From NCBI GenBank assembly GCA_044892525.1, contig CM097888.1, positions 49,476,001 to 49,540,000 on the forward strand: a DNA stretch of 64,000 nucleotides, written 5' to 3'. Positions 3,903 through 64,000 of the stretch are shown here, in pieces (position 1 is the first letter of the stretch; each line of letters begins with the position of its first letter). Both the position numbers and the translations under genes were made by a program. The notes under the pieces are model-generated. The model was not told where the DNA came from, did not search any database, and was given only the letters and a program-made list of their open reading frames with translations. The DNA comes from Schmidtea polychroa. Its lineage: Eukaryota.

Positions 3903-6900
3903 CTGCCCTCCTTATCAAATAGACCGTAACTGCAAAAAATACACTTAGGAGATAAATAACAAAACGTGTTTTCAATTCTGCCAACCAGTTAACCTAAACC
4001 AATCATCCATTTATATTTGTTTGCATCTAGGCCTAGTGATGCAGTTTAAAATGCAGTTAGCAAATTCTGACTTAATTGGCTTAATTGGTTAATATTGCAG
4101 ATACGGTCTATTAGCTAATAATGGTATAGCATACTGGCTATGGATTTACTTAGCAATAAAGCAGTAACTGACAATGAATCACACATTTACACTAAAACTC
4201 ATTTAATAACAAAACAGAAATACAGAATACACAGAAATACTGCTTGTATAGTTTCAAAACATTATCAAACAAAAGCATAAAAGCTTAAGAAACAGGTAAG
4301 AAAGTTCCTGCAAGGTCTGCAATAATTGGCGCTGATGACTATTTATAACTAAGTAATGATTGCACGGAATAATACTGTTAACGAAAAAATACCCGAGTAT
4401 TATTACCCAAGAATGACTGACTTCAAATCAAGAGTCCTGACGATTGCTACATAACTTTGCCTAAAGTACAATACTGACATACCGTTCTCATAAAATATTA
4501 CATGAAGTTAAAATGCAACAATGTACAGCACAAAACAAAACGAAAAACGTGGTTCACAGTCTGCACAGCATTCTTGCCTAGCGATAACAGACAACGTTCA
4601 AGTATTAAAATGGCGATAACTGGCATCAACACCCAAATAGAATAGTTGACAATAAACAGCGTCAACTGACAATGTTGAAATGCTAAAAGTGATTTATAGC
4701 TAACGACAAGGGTAAAATAAACCAGCTGACAATAAACAATAACAGAACTGCATGCAGTTACCACAAAAATGAAATCCACTGACAAAAGCAAACTATAATA
4801 ATATAACACAGAAAAATGCATGCAGGAAACAATGTCATTCAGCAACTACCAAGTCGGGAACATTTGCGACAGGTAAATCCTGCCAAAACTTCAGTCGAGT
4901 GTTGACCATCAAACCACCAAGTTTGTTGAGTATGTCATCCTTTTTAGCCTGAGGGACACCCCTGGCTTGCGATCTACATGGAGGCTTGGTAACACCACCT
5001 TTCAAGCATGCAGCTGTCAAGAAATTCAGCTGTTTATCCTCATCATTAAATGCCGTTTTATAGGCAAGACTCCTGCTGCCGCGAGTTGCAGTCACCATTA
5101 CCATATCACTCAGGTAAGGTCTCGGAGTGGTACGGTTAATTTTATAAGTAGATGATGCATCTGGCCAGTCAAAGAAATTAGAAATTTGCATTTCCTTCAC
5201 AGAAGTTTTACTATTTGCGTCCTGAACGCAACAGACAAAGTCGTTAAAATCATACACTTTTCCAGCCTTTTTCATACTCTGCTCAACCTGGTGATGAAAG
5301 TTATCGGCGCTCATAAACGTGTGGCCTGATTCAAAAAATTTTAGCTCAATTCTGTGAGCAGAAATTTCCGCACTGTTAACAAGATAGACAAGGTAAGAGA
5401 ATAAAGTCCAGTTTTTGTTCTGGCTGGCACAGTTGTCCAACCACAATGTAATTTCTTCAGCATCTCGCTGCGTCAAAAAGAATGCATGAAACGCACTTAC
5501 TAGATCTTCCTTTTTACGGCCTGCGACAGCCTCGTGCCACAACACAGCAACTGACTTAACAACTGGTTTGTCACCGAGTGGAACAAAACTTTCATTGAAC
5601 GCAATTATACGCCGAGTGAAAAGTACAGTTTTAAATGATTCCATGCGTGGCAGCATAATGACCTTTTGTAAGTCAGCCGAAAAAAATACATGTTTTGAGT
5701 CATTAGTCGTTGGTGTAGTACGGTCAGCTCTATATGCCTGCCTACTGTCATCAGCCCTCTTGATGTGAGTTTTCCACTTTGTACACATTTCACAACTTAA
5801 ATCCAAATTATCTTTGGTGTGGTTATTAGAATGAATGTTGAAACTTTCACAAACTTCACACTCTTCATGGCCTAATTTGGCAAACGAAATATCCATACTT
5901 TTAACTTCACTGCGATAAACCTCGTATGAACAATGTATGCCAGGATTTTTCTGCAGGAAATCCCGGTGCATACAACCAACAGTTATGTCAGAGGGCAAGT
6001 ATCGTTTGTTAGGTGCATGCTCACGACGATAATGTGAAACACATGGACCAAAGGATTCAACATGGGCACGTATTGCAATGCGGTCAAATTTCTTATGAAG
6101 GCCAGAACCTCGGCCATCTCGCTTCGGGACAGCAGAGCCTGGACTGAGTGAATGCAATGCTTTCTGCACAACCGAGTCATTGTTCCCAGCAAAACCCAGA
6201 GTGGTAAGATAGAACAGTTTGCAAACTGAAACCTCTTCACCCTTATCGTTACGCATGAAGTAATGAAACGTATTAGAACGTTTTGATTCACCTGGTGTCG
6301 TTTTGCGATCAACAGAATGGCGCTTGACGCCAGAACAAATAAATAAACGTCTTTCAAACCAGGTTAAGCTCCAAAAATCTGCATTCAGCTTTATGCGCTG
6401 AGCCTCATCAATTTTCGAGCAACATTTACGCTTGCAATTATCAAAGCATGGCACACGAATGGCGTGGGTTTCTACCATGTTCTCATGTTGTGCTTTCTTG
6501 CGCGATTTCGGAGACATCGTGTGACGTTTTCTCTTGCTCAGTCCGGTTTTTGGTAGAGGTTGAGCATGACCAGGAACACAAGATCCGGTTATTGGAGACA
6601 TTCTGGTAACAGTATCAGTATTGTCAAAAATGGGTGCTTCGGCAGATTCTGGATTAACTGCAGCATCACCAGCCTCGGGAGTTTCAACGTTCATCAAATC
6701 TGACACTGCTATGTCGCAGTAGAAATCATACGATGCAGTGTCATCTGTCAATCAATCAAAAAAATCAACAAATAAATTAGTTTGTCTTTAAGTAGGATAT
6801 TAATTTATAATCACTTTTATAATAATTTATAATATTCGTAAAGTTTATTATATACACAAAACCAAAGAGGAAATGCAATTCTGCGCATGCGCGTAAGCCA

Positions 6901-13455: not shown

Positions 13456-14690
13456 AAGACATTTTTTTGAATTTCTAAATCTTTATTTTTATTTCATTTA
13501 AATAATTTGATTACTATAAATACTTCTAGCATTTATAATAATTATTTAATTGATTTGGCTAAATAGCTCTCCGCCGAGTTCATGAAGTGACTTATGAGAT
13601 TCTTGGAGATGGACTGCTTTGAGTTTGTCTACCGATACTCGTAAAGTGGTCGTTGGTAATTGAATTTCAAATGTTTTAAAATCTGAACTTCGGCTAATTA
13701 CCCTGTATGGTCCGTCATATGCAGGCTTGATGGCGGTTCTTGATTCGCCACACGTGAGTAGATTCCTTCAGCTCGCTTCGTAGGAATGGTTTCCAATTTT
13801 GATTTCTTTTACTTTTGATTATGATATCACCAGGTAGCCGTCTACCAGTTCCAAAAACACTTTGACTTGGTGATACATTGGTTTCTTCGGAGATAACATT
13901 GCGAATTGATGGAAGTTCATTTGCCGAACTTCTGGAGAGGCTGCTTTAAAAGTTCTATGGAACCTTTCAACTTTGCCATTACATTGTGGATGATATGGTG
14001 TGGTGTTTCTGTGATCAGCATTGAATTTTTGATACATCTCTCTGAATGTAACCGAGATAAACTGCTTGCCGTTGTCAATGATGATGATTTCTGGAACTCC
14101 ACAGCGGCATATGCACTCTGTCTCCAGGGTTCTCGATATTATTTTGCTTTTTATTTCAGAGATCCGGATGGCCTCCGACGAGGAAGTGTATATGTCAATA
14201 ATAGTAATAATGGTCATGATGAAATTGCTTGAATCTTGTCTGATTGTGGTGATATTCCTGAACATAAATAAAAATCCAAGGAATTTTACTTCTGTTTGAG
14301 TTGTGCAACACTTATTTTCATTGATGGGCAAATTTGCGTCTTGCAAGACTTTCCGAATGACTGATAAGTGACCACGATGTTCTTCTCTAGACTCTGAGAA
14401 GATGATTATATCATCTATGTATGCTCTGTCAAATTCTCTGTACGGGCGCAGAAGTTTATCCATTAACCGTTTAAAGGTAAAATGAAAAATAAATGAAAAT
14501 TAAACAACAATTCGATAGAAAATGTAAAATTATGAAACTTGTAAAATTGGTCCCGGATAACCCTATAGTATCTTAGACATTTTTTGAATTTATAAATCTT
14601 TATTTTTATTTCATATTTAAACAAAGTTTAAATCATTTGATTATTATAAATATTTATAGTATTTATAATAATTATTTAATTAATTTGGCT
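13456..14690. repeat. AT-rich direct repeats (~105-115 bp) bracketing the Gypsy remnant (~13456-13560 and ~14575-14690)
   Basis: Both read AGACATTTTTTTGAATTT(C/A)TAAATCTTTATTTTTATTTCAT...TAATTTGGCTA-like, with indels. No TG...CA ends. Confidence 0.75.
13548..14463 (-). pseudogene. Internally deleted Ty3/Gypsy pol remnant (RT palm fused to integrase core, plus integrase C-terminus)
   Basis: ORF 13819-14463 has RAYIDDIIIFS (RT YxDD) followed by GVPEIIIIDNGKQF and TTPYHPQCNGKVERFHRTFK (integrase). At 13548-13740 another frame reads RTAIKPAYDGPYRVI...LRVSVDKLK (GPY/F module). RNase H is absent. Confidence 0.88.
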
Positions 14691-18357: not shown

Positions 18358-18579
18358 NNNNNNNNNNNNNNNNNNNNNNNNNNNNNNNNNNNNNNNNNNN
18401 NNNNNNNNNNNNNNNNNNNNNNNNNNNNNNNNNNNNNNNNNNNNNNNNNNNNNNNNNNNNNNNNNNNNNNNNNNNNNNNNNNNNNNNNNNNNNNNNNNNN
18501 NNNNNNNNNNNNNNNNNNNNNNNNNNNNNNNNNNNNNNNNNNNNNNNNNNNNNNNNNNNNNNNNNNNNNNNNNNNNNNN
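18358..18579. other. Assembly gap (N run)
   Basis: Run of n. Confidence 1.
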
Positions 18580-27250: not shown

Positions 27251-27577
27251 NNNNNNNNNNNNNNNNNNNNNNNNNNNNNNNNNNNNNNNNNNNNNNNNNN
27301 NNNNNNNNNNNNNNNNNNNNNNNNNNNNNNNNNNNNNNNNNNNNNNNNNNNNNNNNNNNNNNNNNNNNNNNNNNNNNNNNNNNNNNNNNNNNNNNNNNNN
27401 NNNNNNNNNNNNNNNNNNNNNNNNNNNNNNNNNNNNNNNNNNNNNNNNNNNNNNNNNNNNNNNNNNNNNNNNNNNNNNNNNNNNNNNNNNNNNNNNNNNN
27501 NNNNNNNNNNNNNNNNNNNNNNNNNNNNNNNNNNNNNNNNNNNNNNNNNNNNNNNNNNNNNNNNNNNNNNNNNNNNN
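27251..27577. other. Assembly gap (N run)
   Basis: Run of n. Confidence 1.
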
Positions 27578-37925: not shown

Positions 37926-38780
37926 ATGACTCATCGTTTCTTTGTCATTTTTGCACTACCCCCCACGATGACTCATCGCTAAACAACGACATATGACTCA
38001 TCAAGGGCACATGACCCGCTGATGACATCATTGATGTCTCATCAAGGTCATTCTATTTTTAGTGCCAAGGTCAGATGACGTCATCGATGACTCATCAAGA
38101 TCATTCTATATTTAGTAACTTGATCACGTGGCGTCATCGATGACTCATCAAGGTCATTAAAGTACACATGACTCATCATTTTTAAACAAAGTCGAATATA
38201 TATCATTCGAAAGGTATTTGAGAGGTCTATTTAATGGTCATATCTTCGAAGGCATATGGTTGGTCAATAACCTTCAAAGGGTCAAAANNNNNNNNNNNNN
38301 NNNNNNNNNNNNNNNNNNNNNNNNNNNNNNNNNNNNNNNNNNNNNNNNNNNNNNNNNNNNNNNNNNNNNNNNNNNNNNNNNNNNNNNNNNNNNNNNNNNN
38401 NNNNNNNNNNNNNNNNNNNNNNNNNNNNNNNNNNNNTGAGTTCGAAGGTCAAAGAGTCCAAGGGTCCAAGGTTGAAAAATTTTTAAACCTTATAATATAC
38501 ATATCAAACAAGAGGTATTTGAGATGTAAGTATAATGGTCATACTTTCAAAGGTTTATGAATGGTCCTGAACCTTCATGGAGTCAAAAACCTGTAAACCT
38601 TATACTTATACATATGTATACATATCAAACAAAAGGTAATTCAAAGATGAGTATGATGGTCCAAGTTTGAAGGTCAAAGGGTCCAAGGTTCAAATTTTTT
38701 AAAACCTTATAATATACATATCAAACCAAAGGTAATTCAAAAGTGAGTATGATGGTCCAAGGTCAAATGGTCCAAGTAAT
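37926..38780 (+). repeat. Complex repeat array: GATGACTCATCAAGGTCA units, then longer CATATCAAAC...GGTCCAAGG units, spanning a gap
   Basis: Seven TGACTCA copies at 37926-38180; repeated CCTTATAATATACATATCAAAC...GAGTATGATGGTCCAAG blocks at 38440-38780. Confidence 0.8.
38288..38436. other. Assembly gap (N run)
   Basis: Run of n. Confidence 1.
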
Positions 38781-43400: not shown

Positions 43401-44197
43401 AAATATTTAAGCAAATTGTAACAAGATTATAAAAATATTGCAGCAAAGTAATAACATACCGATAACTAGTTAATTATATGTGTTAGCACTGTACGCAAAA
43501 CTTATATTAGTGTTTTTTATTTGGGGGATGTGAGATTTTATGTCAGGATATTAAATATTTATATCAATTCAAATTTCTGTTTGTCACAATAAATATTATT
43601 AAATAAAATTTCTCTCAGTTTTATGAACTTAATAATAAATTATTATTGAAAATAATAAATCTTATTGATAAATATATTATTTTTTTAAAGTTTATTCAAT
43701 TCTCAACTATGTTTCTCAATATCCTATAAATTGATAATATATTAATGCAATACTAAAACCTACTAATTTATGCAACTAATTCCTAATTAATTCGAATAAA
43801 ATGTTAATTTAGAATTCTTAAATTTAATAAAACTTATGATTTTTAAATATTATTTTAAAAAACATAATTTAAAAAACATTTTTAAGTTTAATTTTAATCT
43901 ATTTTAAAAAATTAAGATTTCTAGTTACAACTCAAACGATAGAATGATAGAATTTAAAACTCTACAAAATGACATCATTATTTATTCACACTCAAAACAC
44001 CTAAACCAATGCCTTTTTCATCCAAATTTTATATACACTTTTAAAGATATTAATCGATACTTAAGAAAACCTATTCTCATATTAAAACTAAACATTTATT
44101 AAAATCATGAGAAGTTCGATCGTTGGTGATATGACCTAAACTATAGAAATTCGTCAACAACTAAGGGTAAAATTTTAAGGAACCGCATCAATTTTGA

Positions 44198-44198
<1 letters not shown>

Positions 44199-44264
<66 letters not shown>
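44199..44264. repeat. (TA)33 microsatellite
   Basis: Perfect TA run. Confidence 0.97.
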
Positions 44265-44267
<3 letters not shown>

Positions 44268-44871
44268 CACTGAAAATATGCATTTTATTAGGGTTAGTAA
44301 ATAAAATAAAACTTATCACATGTAATCCCTATTTTTAATAATGTAAACGATAAAAATCAAGACAAGAGAGGACAAGGCAAAGTTTATGCATTTAGTATTG
44401 CCAGGCCTAATGAGCAGTGACCAAATATCTGTGGCTGAAAGACACGGTGGATTTGTTCGCATCCGCAAGGGTTGACTGTGCATCCTCCAAGTGGGGTTAG
44501 AATTACCTGGGCATTATAGTGCTCCGTACGGAACATTACGCCTAGAATGTCAGGGTAGTCAACTACCAGCACATTCGAAACGTATTAAAATATATTACAA
44601 ATGTGCGAGCATGACAATGCGTCATTGGAACTATAACCAAATTAATTAATGTTTTCACTAACAACAATATATATTTACAGAGGCATCCCACTAGTTGGAT
44701 TACAACCGCCCACCACGACGCTCAGCTTGTAAATATATATTAATTAAAAAGGGCCCCCAACCCTATTATATTTAATTTACAAAATAATGTTTTTAAAGGG
44801 CTTCTCCGTCAGTTTTCTCACTCTTCTGGATTTTCTCTGGAATTATTATTATTATTATTATTATTATTTAA

Positions 44872-44916
<45 letters not shown>

Positions 44917-53831: not shown

Positions 53832-54192
53832 ATGGGAAATATATTTAAAAAACCTAAAAAACCCAAAACTCAACAATTGAAACATATCGAATCTTTTCGG
53901 AGTTCAGTCAAAGTATGCGCCATATTTGATTTTACATCAGGCAATCCCGAAGAATTATCGTTTGAAAAAAATGATATTCTTTTCGCCATTGAAAAATCCA
54001 ATCGATTATGGTGGCATGCTCGACATGGAAAATCGAAAAAAACCGGATATATTCCACAAAATTATGTTGTTGAATATGAGCATTGTTATAAATTCCAACC
54101 AGCTTGGCATGATATTACAGATCTCGAAGCCGATCGTAAATTGTTGAAAACCGATCAACAAATTGGAACGTTTATCATTCGTCCTGACAATG
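53832..54192 (+). CDS. Src-family-like protein exon 1: myristoylation motif, SH3, start of SH2
   Basis: MGNIFKKPKKPK (Gly2 plus basic patch); SH3 AIFDF...EELSF...WW...GYIPQNYV; SH2 start AWHDI...GTFIIRP. Phase-1 donor G|GTTAGT at 54193. Confidence 0.9.
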
Positions 54193-56352
54193 GTTAGTGA
54201 GGTTTTGACTTTTCCCCATACATTTTCAAATCAATTCGAAATTTATATTGAAAATTTTAAATTTATTAATTTATTAATTCTTATCAGAAATATTGATTGT
54301 GCATTTATTTATAATTTTTTTTTATTATTTTTTTATTAATAATTTTCTAGTTTTTCTTTAATATATATTTAATTGGAGAAATTATTATTATAAATATCAT
54401 TTTATTGCAATAGTGGATGGGAGGGGTATAATTGGCTGCCTTACCGGGTTGATTCTATGCATAACACGATGAAATTATTATTTCAATTAATTACTCTAAT
54501 GTTACAATTTATTATTTTCTTATAATTTTGTTTTATCATTTATTGCGATTCTTGTTTTCCATCATTCCTGGACAGTGGCGTGAAATATATTAAGCAAAAC
54601 TAGTTCATCTTTTTTAACATTAAAAAGGCGAAGAGACATTTTTTTCTCATACTTTTTTAAATGAATTCTTTTCCTTAGTAAATCATTTCTGTGGTTCAAA
54701 TAAATCTAGATTAAATTACTCATCAACATGCCTTTTTAAAGATAGGACTACGGGGGTTGTGGCTCTCAAATTCTGTATTTTGTCATGCTGAGGCGAATTT
54801 GGAGAGTGAATATGCAGATGAAGCAATATTTTAATTTATGTACTCACTCTTTTTATATCTAACGCGTTATAGTAATAGTAAAACACAGATGTATAAAAAA
54901 TTAAATGAGCCATTTATAATTTGAAAGTCGAAAATTTTTATTTTCTTCTGATATCATTAATAAACACTATTATATAATAAATTTACATTATCTATAACTA
55001 CAAAACACACAAAATATCTCTGTTAGAGCTTATCAATGTATTGGAATCGTTAACTATCTCATTATAACATAAAATGCTCTTGCCCCATTTTCAAAATAAA
55101 TGTCTAATAAGTTTCATAGTGAGAAGGGACTCAGGTTTACGACTTCTGAAATATTACAAATCACTCGGTAAAGATAGAACTTAGTGTCAAAAATTAAAAT
55201 TAATTAAATTGGCATAAACGTATCGTTTCTGACATAAATTTATTAAATAAATTATTTCATTGAACTAAATTTTCTCTTCATGTTTAGTAAATAATAAACT
55301 TGTTCTACACAGCAGTCGAATAAATTTGTTGAATGTGCTGAAGGAAGCATTTAAAAAATATTTATTTTTACAAATTATCAATGTGCAATGAAAAAAAATA
55401 CTTAATGTACTTTTAAATATGAAAATAAATGTAGATATATATTTTAGGAATATATGCTATAAAAGAACTAATAAGAAAGTTCTCTACACTTAAATCAAAG
55501 GCCTGGTAAAATAAATATTATTCATATTAATAAAATGACAAACCTGGCACGCTGACAAATGAAATCCTTGATGCGCCATTTCATTATATCCGGGCTAGAT
55601 TCTATTGGCCGTTATCTAATCCAAATTATCAAATATAAATTCTTTTCAGATTATGTAATAATTATGAATGGATGCAAATTATGTGTCCATTAAAAATCAA
55701 TTTGAAAAACTTGTTATTCCATATTGACAATGAAGAATAATTATGGTCGGCAGAAGAAGAAATGAACAGTCCGGGAAATACGCCTCTTATAAATCGTATA
55801 AATCTTATAAATTTATCATTATCTAAATTGTATAGGAAACTGCCGGAATGGCTTGAAAACCAAACTAAAAATGTGACAATTTAGTTGAAAACGTAAATCT
55901 TTCTTGGGTTATGGATATTATTTTGAGTTTTTACAGAAAAATATTTCGACCAAGAAGCAAATGGACATCGCTCAAACCACTGAGTTGACATTTATTGACT
56001 ATTAACTGCTTGCAACTTACATACCCCTTTAATTTGATTAGACACTTATCTCGGTTAGCCTTCTTTATTCTTAGTAACAACTAACACCAACTGAGTTTCA
56101 ATAGGCAATCAAGGAAAGGTTTTAAGTTAAGTTGATGATCCGGGTTTTTTCTTGATTGCTCTTGATGAAAACCCAATTCTCGAGGAACCCTAAACATATT
56201 TAAGTTATATCACTTTATTACAGTTTGCTTTTTAATTATCATAAAGAAAACACATGTCTACCAGCCTAACTCAAGAGACCCAAATGATAATCCCTTTTAT
56301 TATGTTTATATACTGAAAATCAAGGAGAAAATATAATTTTGAAAAAAAAGTA

Positions 56353-56562
56353 CCGTATATACTCGTGTATAAGCCGAAGTGAGTTTTTATAGTCAATTTT
56401 TTGTCCAAAATCAAGTACCCGTATATAAGCCGAAGTAAAAAAAATAGCTAAAATCTGACGAATTATTTAAATAATCACAAAATCTTGTTTTTGACATGTT
56501 TTTGAAAAAATTAGCTTAAAAAATTGCCCAAAATTTCTCGGCTTATACACGAGTATATACGG
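56353..56562. mobile_element. Tc1/mariner (Tc2/pogo-like) MITE, 210 bp
   Basis: Perfect 25-bp TIRs CCGTATATACTCGTGTATAAGCCGA; TA on both sides; an internal partial TIR copy near 56420. Confidence 0.92.
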
Positions 56563-57431
56563 TATTTATAAAATATTATATTATGAAAAAAATCAAATTT
56601 ATTTTTGTAATTTTTTAACCATTTCGTGATCTGGTACACATATGTAGCATTTAATTTTTGTCAGGACTAAGCGCTTTAAATTGGGTTCGATTTGGTTTAT
56701 ATGCGTAACACAACAAAAGACTAATGATACTGATATATATCCTCATCAACTCCTTGATGTTTCTACCTCATTTTCTAATAAAAAAAGATAATTTTGACTT
56801 ATAAAAACATTAAAAAATATTCCCATGTCCTCTAGAAAAAAATAAGTCGTGAGATGGTTAAATAGAACAATTTCTGTTTTCTTGAACTTTTCTGTCCATT
56901 CTCCATATGACAGCATATCAAATGTTGATAAGCCCCTCAGTTATCTATCCCACAGTGAAATTTGGACCCAGTCCCAATTATTTATACGTTCATTTCATGT
57001 CCTATATACAAATCCAGTAATGAAAATAATTCCGTAACGTGCTTACCGATTACGATAATTGCTTTGTGCATTTTTATGTACCAACGGACTGAATGACAAT
57101 TGTAAAAGATCTAATGAGCTTCTGTTGAGTTGAAATATGAAATTTACTATCTAATTTGCATTATTAAACTGTTTATCTATTGAATAACTGACACAAAATT
57201 CATTAAATTGTAATTAAATTTATGTTTAACCAATATTCAACATTTGCATATTTTCCATCATTATTGTAAGGTGCAGTGCCAAATTATTTTATAATATTTC
57301 TGTAACAATTTTACATTAGAATAACCATTCGAAATCATATTTTCCATTTATTTCAGTACCGAAAACATTAATTCTCATAGAAATATTCAATTACTGTATT
57401 TACTCTTCATTTTCAAGATCAAACATAAAAT

Positions 57432-57454
57432 ATAATAATAATAATAATAATAAT

Positions 57455-57490
<36 letters not shown>

Positions 57491-57510
57491 TATAATAATA
57501 ATAGTAATAA
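57432..57510. repeat. (AAT)n microsatellite
   Basis: Long, nearly perfect AAT run. Confidence 0.95.
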
Positions 57511-57737
57511 GTTTAAAATACTAAAGGTAATCGGATACATTTGTAAACAGTTTCCCCGTATCGTTTAATGTTTTTGTTCGCTGAGGTGATTATGATTTTT
57601 CATACGCCATGTTTACAAGTTTACAGATTTTCTATGACCAAGCTAATAAGCAAGTGATGTGATTTAGAGTTGTATAGAGTTGAATCAGCAATAGTGTATA
57701 CTTACCTGGCGCGAAGAGAACTCTTCGCGTCTCCTGC

Positions 57738-57790
57738 ATAGTACTGATGAGAGCCAAAGCTCGAAACTAGTCTTCTATTGGGATTTGCAC
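57738..57790 (+). ncRNA. Type I hammerhead ribozyme with minimal palindromic helix III
   Basis: Core CTGATGA (57744-57750); helix II GAGC-CAAA-GCTC (57751-57762); GAAA (57763-57766); palindrome ACTAGT (57766-57771); predicted cleavage after GTC (C57772); helix I ATAGTA / TTCTAT with one U-U mismatch. Confidence 0.8.
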
Positions 57791-58039
57791 TGGGTATCAC
57801 AAAGCTTGTCCTGTTTATATTATTCAAATAATAATAATAATAATAAATTTTGCTTTCCTACCAATAAATTTCCCCAGCTCTAATTTACACAGGACAAAAT
57901 GGCAGATAATTTAACCAATCGCTTGAAAAATTTTACTCATTATTTTTGTGCTTTTTATCAGTGAAATGTATGAAAATTGAAAGATTTGATAAATTTTTTA
58001 CTGTCTACAAATCGATAATTGATTATATTAATTATTCAG

Positions 58040-58186
58040 ATAAGCACCAATTGGTGCTGTCTGTGAAATGTGAATGTGGAAAGCCAATAGTGAAGCACTA
58101 CAAAATCAATAACGATTTCAATAGATATTTCATTTATCGCGATAAAACATTCGCTAGTTTGGTTGAGCTTATCAAATATTACACCG
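58040..58186 (+). CDS. Src-family-like protein exon 2: SH2 core
   Basis: Acceptor TTATTCAG|AT matches the phase-1 donor of exon 1, giving IIRPDN-D-KHQLVLSVK...VKHYKI...KTFASLVELIKYYT. 147 bp; donor G|GTAAGA. Confidence 0.88.
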
Positions 58187-58728
58187 GTAAGAATTTATTA
58201 CTTTTTTTTATCTTTTCCATAGATTATATGTCTAGTAGGCCCTAATGATGCCTGATTTATATACGATTCTTATTGGCCAATTCAACTCTGGCCAATAGAA
58301 TATATTCAAATAATGATTGGCACGGTAATTCATTCACAATTCCGCAGGTTTTGGCCTTCTAATTTCTTGTCAACGCAACTGAATTTATAATAAGGCTCTG
58401 TTTTAATTACACCAACCGTAGATGATTGATGTACAATATAGTATAAGAAAATCAATTGAATGATAAAAGCACTATAAATTAAGATATTATTAAAGATATG
58501 AGGAGGATAAATAGGATATAAAATTAGAAAAAGTATATCGATAAACCTGTACTATCATGGCGCGTACGCCTATCATAAAATACGTACATTTTGACTTTTA
58601 ATTCGGCAAGAGTGCAATTATGAATGGTCATGGTTGAATGCCTTTAATATATAAATGTCAACAGCTACCATCGAAAGAATGTGGGAAAGAGACAAAGACA
58701 AGTATTAGCATAAATATTTTTGTTGCTT

Positions 58729-59049: not shown

Positions 59050-59560
59050 GATTATCGAAGTTTGTACATTATTCGTTAACGTTTCAATAAATTCGTCAGA
59101 AATTCTTGCGAATAATTTTGAAACATTTCCTTTACCTTTGTTCCCATAGTCCAAAAGCGCTACTCAAACATGAAATTTGTGTTGTTACTCAGAAGCTTTT
59201 AACGATTACAAAGGGAAGATAAGAAAGCAGTTAGGGAATTTAAACTATAGGATTGTGTCAAATTCATGTAAAGTATGCAATATGTTTATTAATAAGTCAA
59301 AAGCTCCGGTTGAATTGTGTTCTGATCTCGTTTATCAGTTTACATGTAATGAATGTAATTTCACGTACATTGGAGAGGCTTCCCATCATCTCTGTATTCG
59401 TACACGAAAAATTTATTGACCGAAGGCATTGACAAATGTTAGTGAACACAATAAGGGCTGTAAGAGTCTGATTTTAAAATTTTATTAAAAAATTTAAATA
59501 ATTTGTAAGGTGTTATAGATTAAGTCATTGAATCCAAAAATTAATATGCAAAATTCAGTG
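59050..59560 (+). pseudogene. Penelope-like element 3' remnant (GIY-YIG endonuclease)
   Basis: SDLVYQFTCNECNFTYIGEASHHLCIR matches the Penelope VYxFxCxxCxxxYIGxT motif. After a frameshift it continues ...NVSEHNKGC...FKI. Confidence 0.78.
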
Positions 59561-63948: not shown

Positions 63949-64000
63949 AATTCAGTGACGGCCTGTGTTGCACTCTCGCCCAACCGTATACGAGTGAAGA
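63949..64000 (+). CDS. Src-family-like protein exon 3 (partial): SH2 end
   Basis: Pyrimidine tract and TTTTTAG|AA, phase 1. The spliced product reads LIKYYT-E-FSDGLCCTLAQPYTSE, matching the Src/Frk DGLCxxLxxP motif. Runs off the window. Confidence 0.85.

Follow-up and report, generated by a model that had tools for sequence, protein, structure and literature searches.

Does the hammerhead-like motif carried in an intron of this DNA represent a genuine ribozyme motif, and if so, where did it come from and does it have any bearing on the gene in which it lies? An earlier note on this locus, made from the letters of the sequence, described a dimer-type hammerhead within the pre-mRNA of a Src-like gene and proposed that it might tie that gene to the expression of a retroelement family. 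Herein we examine these proposals computationally across the window, by which we mean the whole 64-kb stretch of DNA that was analysed, whose G+C content is approximately 28%.

The motif lies in an intron that splits an SH2 domain

The gene that hosts the motif was modelled as two exons and the intron between them:

53832-54192, + strand: host exon 1, which runs from the start codon through a short N-terminus and an SH3 domain into an SH2 domain, whose first half it encodes (Pfam SH3_1, E 1.2e-13)
54193-58039, + strand: host intron, phase 1, 3847 nt, which holds the hammerhead (GT at 54193, AG at 58038-58039)
58040-58187, + strand: host exon 2, which completes the SH2 domain with its second half (Pfam SH2 at profile positions 33-77, E 3.1e-7)

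The splice donor reads ATG/GTTAGT at 54192/54193 and the acceptor reads TTATTCAG/AT at 58039/58040, and when the exons are joined in phase 1 they read ...RPDN-D-KHQLVLSV..., which is a continuous SH2 domain. The donor that follows exon 2 reads G/GTAAG. These junctions place the motif in the SH2-splitting intron and on the + strand, in agreement with the intronic, sense-strand location first proposed for it, and the distance from C57772 to the exon base at 58040 is 267 nt, as had been given.

The closest protein on record is P0001, a 214-aa SH3-SH2 protein. Exon 1 is 93% identical to its residues 1-121, and 47 of the 49 residues encoded by exon 2 are identical to its C-terminal part; the open frame of exon 2 returned no relatives from the protein collection that was searched. 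When the P0001 model is set against the window, positions 57906-58039 (+) correspond to a stretch inserted inside the SH2 domain. Given that the 54192/58040 splice model yields an uninterrupted SH2 domain, the database model for P0001 may use the wrong acceptor. The description of the host as Src-like is therefore justified in part: the Met-Gly start, the SH3 domain and the split SH2 domain are all present, but no kinase exon is found up to base 64000.

The motif has the architecture of a type I hammerhead

The motif itself occupies a short segment close to the intron's 3' end:

57732-57784, + strand: hammerhead domain, type I (RF00163, 24.9 bits; RF02275, 19.1 bits; model R1, 48.0 bits; descriptor test)

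Read directly as RNA, positions 57738-57778 (+) are AUAGUA-CUGAUGA-GAGC-CAAA-GCUC-GAAA-C-UA-G-UC-UUCUAU. The conserved hammerhead core bases, among them the A-U pair forming the base of helix III, are all present at 57744-57772, and the full catalytic core that had been claimed is accounted for by CUGAUGA at 57744-57750, GAAA at 57763-57766 and a GUC in which C57772 is the cleavage-site base. Helix II is, as described, a clean stem of 4 bp (GAGC/GCUC, 57751-54 with 57759-62) closed by a CAAA loop; all of its pairs are Watson-Crick and it starts with a G-C pair adjoining the core.

Helix I forms five of its six possible pairs, matching the earlier count, between AUAGUA (57738-43) and UUCUAU (57773-78), with a U.U at the second position. 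Its proposed extension through UGCA/UGCA is less likely than a closing stem that RNAfold predicts beyond helix I, between 57732-36 and 57779-83. At minimum, the closing pairs C57733-G57781 and C57734-G57780 are backed by alignment to natural hammerheads, and a small loop 1 remains under either version of the closing stem.

Of helix III only the palindrome ACUAGU is left, as had been reported, and we read it at 57766-57771. Since a loop of 2 nt is too short to be closed by a C-G pair, the monomer holds at most one helix III pair, the A-U pair, and it is on this structural ground that the label "dimer-type" is appropriate.

The hammerhead motif exceeds chance expectation

No Rfam match at gathering level was found anywhere in the 64-kb window. 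The earlier note had suggested a Hammerhead_1 search, and when one was run the motif was indeed matched by RF00163, but at 24.9 bits, which is below the gathering cut-off of 34 (E 2.7e-4 under permissive settings in a 161-nt search). In place of the stable helix III hairpin that RF00163 calls for, the motif has only the ACUAGU stub. The bare core pattern, for its part, is expected by chance 0.23-0.45 times per window. Together with the sub-threshold Rfam score, this expectation is what could be cited for a fortuitous origin, in which a hammerhead-like sequence arose here with no past as a ribozyme.

The complete motif is a different matter. Arithmetic from the 161-nt search gives a Rfam E-value, scaled to one family over the whole window, of approximately 2.5e-5. 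We also defined a strict descriptor, in which the core must come with helix II, with the pair of helix III and a palindromic loop, and with no fewer than five of the six helix I pairs; this descriptor finds one site in the window, the motif, and returned 0 matches in 60 Mb of simulated sequence carrying the dinucleotide composition of the window.

For comparison with natural relatives, we fetched hammerheads from metagenome contigs with a degenerate pattern derived from the motif, which yielded >120 type I loci, nearly all of which have a four-base palindromic helix III loop. Ninety distinct natural type I hammerheads from these data form alignment A1, from which the covariance model R1 was built. 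Helices I and II covary strongly in A1: pairing holds in 89.6% of cells, and changes on both sides affect 191 cells, as compared to 54 in shuffles; for helix I, covariation is seen at all six positions. Under R1 the motif scores 48.0 bits over the full length of the model (1-57), as compared to 16 bits for the best of the other sites in the window, and members of the metagenome set score 23-83 bits. The core portion of the R1 score is partly circular because the training sequences were retrieved with a pattern derived from this same motif; the R1 alignment also agrees on features that lie outside the search pattern, namely the helix I register, the loop 1 residues and the two closing pairs. 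Collectively, the empty simulation, the scaled E-value and the R1 score with its agreeing loop 1 and closing-stem features leave a fortuitous origin very improbable, and we conclude that this is a genuine hammerhead-ribozyme motif.

The motif resides in a candidate insert bracketed by microsatellites

The composition of the intron changes around the hammerhead, and repeats lie on both sides of it:

57515-57826, + strand: candidate inserted element of approximately 312 nt (composition profile and microsatellite bracketing; boundaries inferred)
57432-57510, strand not assigned: (ATA/AAT)26 microsatellite that precedes the candidate insert on its 5' side, scored 137 by Tandem Repeats Finder
57827-57844, + strand: (AAT)6 on the 3' side, either the tail of the element or leftover target microsatellite (direct reading, pattern count)
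57494-57514, + strand: upstream member of a 21-nt direct repeat, matching 57830-57850 at 19/21 positions

Positions 57515-57826 have a G+C content of 0.32-0.52, as compared to 0-0.2 in the flanks. The (AAT)6 tail previously noted is found at 57827-57844. There are only four AAT-type microsatellite loci in the 64 kb, two of which bracket the block, and the probability that two of the four would lie within 320 nt of each other by chance is roughly 4%. The 21-nt direct repeat is possibly a target-site duplication or possibly a split microsatellite; because both of its copies are mostly (AAT)n, a target-site duplication is merely suggested and the resemblance may be coincidental.

Elsewhere in the window, no sequence similar to the 57515-57826 block was found, and the hammerhead motif is unique, as the earlier description of a single copy implied. 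Apart from the microsatellite, the window contains no tandem repeat around the motif. No tRNA-like or polymerase III promoter-like part was found in the block, and a tRNA-like SINE head was rejected as no tRNA-like part was found. The 312-nt RNA folds no better than shuffled sequences (z -0.7) and adopts no compact viroid-like fold; compact circular RNAs have been described for retrozymes, whereas this block lacks such fold strength.

Outside the window, a scan of viral contigs gave no matches, and a full-text search of the literature for the sequence matched only cloning primers. None of the >120 metagenome type I hammerheads has the ACUAGU stub or similar flanks, and the flanks of the block bear no resemblance to any of 120 metagenome hammerhead loci. 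Among 100 metagenome contigs that carry this kind of hammerhead, the majority have either a single copy or two inverted copies spaced by 200-450 nt. Same-strand pairs occur in a few of the metagenome contigs at spacings of 364 to approximately 1750 nt (loci L003, L009, L013, L023, L031 and L097 were examined for pairing).

Comparison with known hammerhead systems

Type I hammerheads with a palindromic stub for helix III had been put forward as the relevant class, and this architecture has been described both in retrozymes of metazoans and in some Penelope-like elements (PLEs) (PMC4209133, PMC7229834). The canonical metazoan type I hammerhead has a helix I of 6 bp, a helix II of 4 bp and a helix III of 1-2 bp with a 2-4-nt palindromic loop, and acts as a dimer if another copy lies close by (PMC4209133); it is placed in tandem non-LTR retrozymes of ~170-400 nt (PMC7229834). 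The motif resembles the non-LTR retrozyme hammerheads (Cervera and de la Pena 2020, PMC7229834) in being type I with six helix I positions and a helix II of 4 bp, in its core-adjoining G-C pair, A-rich loop 2 and a helix III of two pairs whose palindromic loop is short, and in its AT-rich host element of a few hundred nucleotides. It departs from them in that there is one copy here, whereas retrozymes form head-to-tail tandem repeats of 150-450 bp. Relative to most of the retrozyme-type members compared, loop 2 has 4 nt instead of 6 and the helix III loop has 2 nt instead of 4, and the U.U in helix I falls at a position that is paired in 91% of those members.

PLEs provide a second point of reference. 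Their minimal hammerheads combine a helix II that is long (7-8 bp) with a helix I that is short (4-5 bp) (PMC4209133), unlike the 4-bp helix II and six helix I positions found here. Most PLE-type motifs are dispersed singles that probably derive from truncated PLEs (PMC4209133).

In the next intron of the host gene, beyond exon 2, an 81-codon open stretch on the + strand (59174-59416) contains a GIY-YIG-like motif at 59330-59374 with an internal CxxC. This frame lies 1.4 kb downstream of the hammerhead on the same strand and is interrupted on both sides; it has no Pfam match and matches phrog_29191 with an E-value of 1e-5, and no reverse transcriptase remains were recognised upstream of it. 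An internal CxxC within GIY-YIG has been described for Penelope-like endonucleases, and the remnant hints that PLEs may once have been present in this locus. The motif is thus comparable to the hammerheads of PLE terminal repeats in its expected dimer action and its occurrence as a single motif, and possibly in its microsatellite setting and the GIY-YIG-like remnant 1.4 kb away. In contrast to PLE copies, it has no adjoining reverse transcriptase or endonuclease frame, and a host exon parts it from the remnant.

Other hammerheads offer more partial parallels. The amniote hammerheads HH9 and HH10 act as monomers and are conserved across species. Like them, the motif is type I, lies on the sense strand of an intron and has a closing stem beyond loop 1; their helix III is stable, whereas here it is a stub. 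The SINE-like hammerhead elements of schistosomes and the satellite hammerheads of newts are short, dispersed or repeated non-coding sequences that carry a hammerhead of the same type with a weak helix III (cited in PMC4209133 and PMC7229834), and the motif shares both this type and this weakness.

A solitary retroelement copy is the probable explanation

The reading that in our estimation probably accounts for this locus is that of a short retroelement carrying a hammerhead and present here as a solitary genomic copy, either a solo non-LTR retrozyme monomer or a truncated PLE derivative, that is silent within the intron. A retroelement origin of the motif is likely. The element would have inserted into or beside an (AAT)n microsatellite within the SH2-splitting intron, in the same orientation as the gene, and as a consequence of this orientation it would be transcribed as part of the pre-mRNA. 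As helix III is a palindromic stub, the active fold needs a second matching copy, as is provided in the multimeric transcripts of tandem arrays; with no matching copy nearby, the motif is expected to be catalytically silent or nearly so. The hammerhead would then leave with the spliced intron, without consequence for the host gene. Silence in vivo is what we would expect from a helix III loop of 2 nt, and counting against it is one coral retrozyme hammerhead that cleaves efficiently from a monomeric repeat (PMC7229834).

Several published observations bear on this reading. Solo retrozyme monomers are common and evenly spread along chromosomes, with ~43% of the copies in Xenopus being intronic, and retrozymes are related to the terminal repeats of PLEs (bioRxiv 10.64898/2026.07.22.740005). 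PLEs favour microsatellite targets, the published preference being mostly for (TA)n, and several PLE clades are present in cnidarians (PMC8557442). Taken together, the published single copies and the metagenome contigs indicate that elements of this sort usually occur as a lone copy in an intron. We regard the motif as most likely the silent leftover of an insertion, which is a common thing in invertebrate genomes.

If the solitary-copy explanation is true, the locus adds one more dispersed copy to a class that is catalogued by the thousands per invertebrate genome, and its value lies in annotation, as the marker of a retroelement that inserted within an intron of a signalling-adaptor gene. 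Were the motif conserved in orthologous introns or cleaved in vivo, it would matter more, as the invertebrate equivalent of those intronic hammerheads that amniotes conserve.

A U1-like 13-mer and a hairpin adjoin the hammerhead

Two further features lie immediately upstream of the motif within the candidate insert:

57698-57710, + strand: 13-mer that, read as its complement on the minus strand, gives a perfect donor consensus, CAG/GTAAGTAT
57708-57731, + strand: strong GC-rich hairpin with 10 pairs and a 4-nt loop (RNAfold minimum-energy and centroid structures)

The 13-mer at 57698-57710 presumably reads like the 5' end of U1 snRNA, and the hairpin overlaps its last bases and abuts the closing stem of the hammerhead. 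The exact 12-mer of this sequence has a single match in the window, where composition predicts 0.006, and this excess gives some footing to two accounts of the region. Under the first, the minus strand carries an antisense exon (~57710-57809) that ends at CAG/GTAAGTAT and the hammerhead is incidental; a 41-codon open frame on the minus strand does span the motif, but its peptide has no relatives in the protein collection. Under the second, a 5' fragment of U1 was added to a plus-strand retrocopy by template switching, such that the element runs from 57698 to 57826. Additions of this kind to retrocopies are documented for SINEU elements (PMC4494074); here, however, position 57698 is not flanked by a target-site duplication, Rfam yields no U1 match outside the 13-mer, and U1-like motifs show no enrichment around 125 other hammerheads. 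Neither account explains why the hammerhead is complete, and we consider the pair of them unlikely.

Further candidates were also tried and rejected. A U1 gene, pseudogene or SINEU head was set aside as there is no Rfam U1 match at E<=10 in 57690-57850 or at E<=5 in the whole window. A minus-strand spliced-leader RNA gene was rejected, with no Hydra-type Sm site and no likeness to a published leader, and a minus-strand match to U4 (17.5 bits against a cut-off of 46) was taken as chance.

One could also imagine that the 13-mer, the hairpin and the hammerhead make up one functional RNA module of an undescribed short retroelement, which would pair with donor sites while carrying a dimer-dependent ribozyme. 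We attach very little credence to this idea, which, if true, would mean that sense intronic copies could disturb the splicing or processing of host transcripts. The locus would also gain in importance if the U1-like 13-mer and the hairpin were to prove constant parts of a family.

Improbable readings as a host-selected or trans-acting ribozyme

Two other explanations would give the hammerhead a role in the host gene. In the first, it would be an intronic ribozyme selected by the host, conserved in the manner of amniote HH9 and HH10, that acts in cis on the pre-mRNA. The core is intact, the site lies 267 nt before an exon, and the HH9 model (RF02275) aligns over its full length, though weakly, at 19.1 bits (E 0.069). 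This score is far below the HH9 cut-off of 52, however, and the helix III stub means that the monomer is not expected to fold actively, while the microsatellite flanks and the GC-richer block suggest insertion. We judge host selection to be highly improbable.

The second is the proposal of the earlier note that the intronic hammerhead pairs in trans with RNAs of its family and cleaves the pre-mRNA, making host output depend on the expression of the retroelement. The motif does lie on the sense strand of the intron, its palindromic stub ACUAGU permits a 6-bp intermolecular helix III, and dimeric activity is documented for this type of hammerhead (PMC4209133, PMC7229834). The documented dimers, however, form within one multimeric transcript (PMC4209133, PMC7229834), and a productive double hammerhead requires a partner with a compatible helix I, of which there is none in the intron or elsewhere in the window. 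The predicted dimer is also weak. RNAcofold gives -29.3 kcal/mol for the dimer versus -25.4 kcal/mol for two monomers, a net stabilisation of merely -3.9 (minimum energy) to -4.5 (ensemble) kcal/mol, and a gain of ~4 kcal/mol implies a Kd of ~1 mM, which is near the millimolar range. Furthermore, PLE-type dimers cleave poorly in vitro (PMC4209133), and a PLE hammerhead site in another species is without RNA ends in public RNA-seq (PMC11167929). A regulatory link at the RNA level is thus predicted to be thermodynamically unlikely, and the proposal that trans cleavage ties the host gene to retroelement expression is not supported; we assign it a very slim chance.

Other features of the window

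Several features unrelated to the hammerhead were noted during the analysis. The sequence contains runs of N at 18358-18579, 27251-27577 and 38288-38436, totalling 698 bases. At 44629-44726 on the minus strand there is a weak match to metazoan SRP RNA (25.8 bits, cut-off 70, E 0.0097) next to a long (ATT)n stretch at 44842-44916, and this is possibly a fragment of a 7SL-derived SINE. Nearby, 44196-44272 gives weak matches to microRNA-precursor hairpins (mir-1277, 30.5 bits, E 0.11; mir-297 on both strands); the segment is AT-rich and is probably a low-complexity palindrome.

Two reading frames attributable to mobile elements were also recognised, both on the minus strand. An uninterrupted frame of 638 codons at 4835-6751, located in a GC-richer block, encodes a DUF7869 domain (E 6.2e-9) and is likely the gene of a DNA transposon. 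A 214-codon frame at 13819-14463 encodes the end of a reverse transcriptase domain and a partial integrase core, and represents a truncated piece of pol from an LTR-type retroelement.
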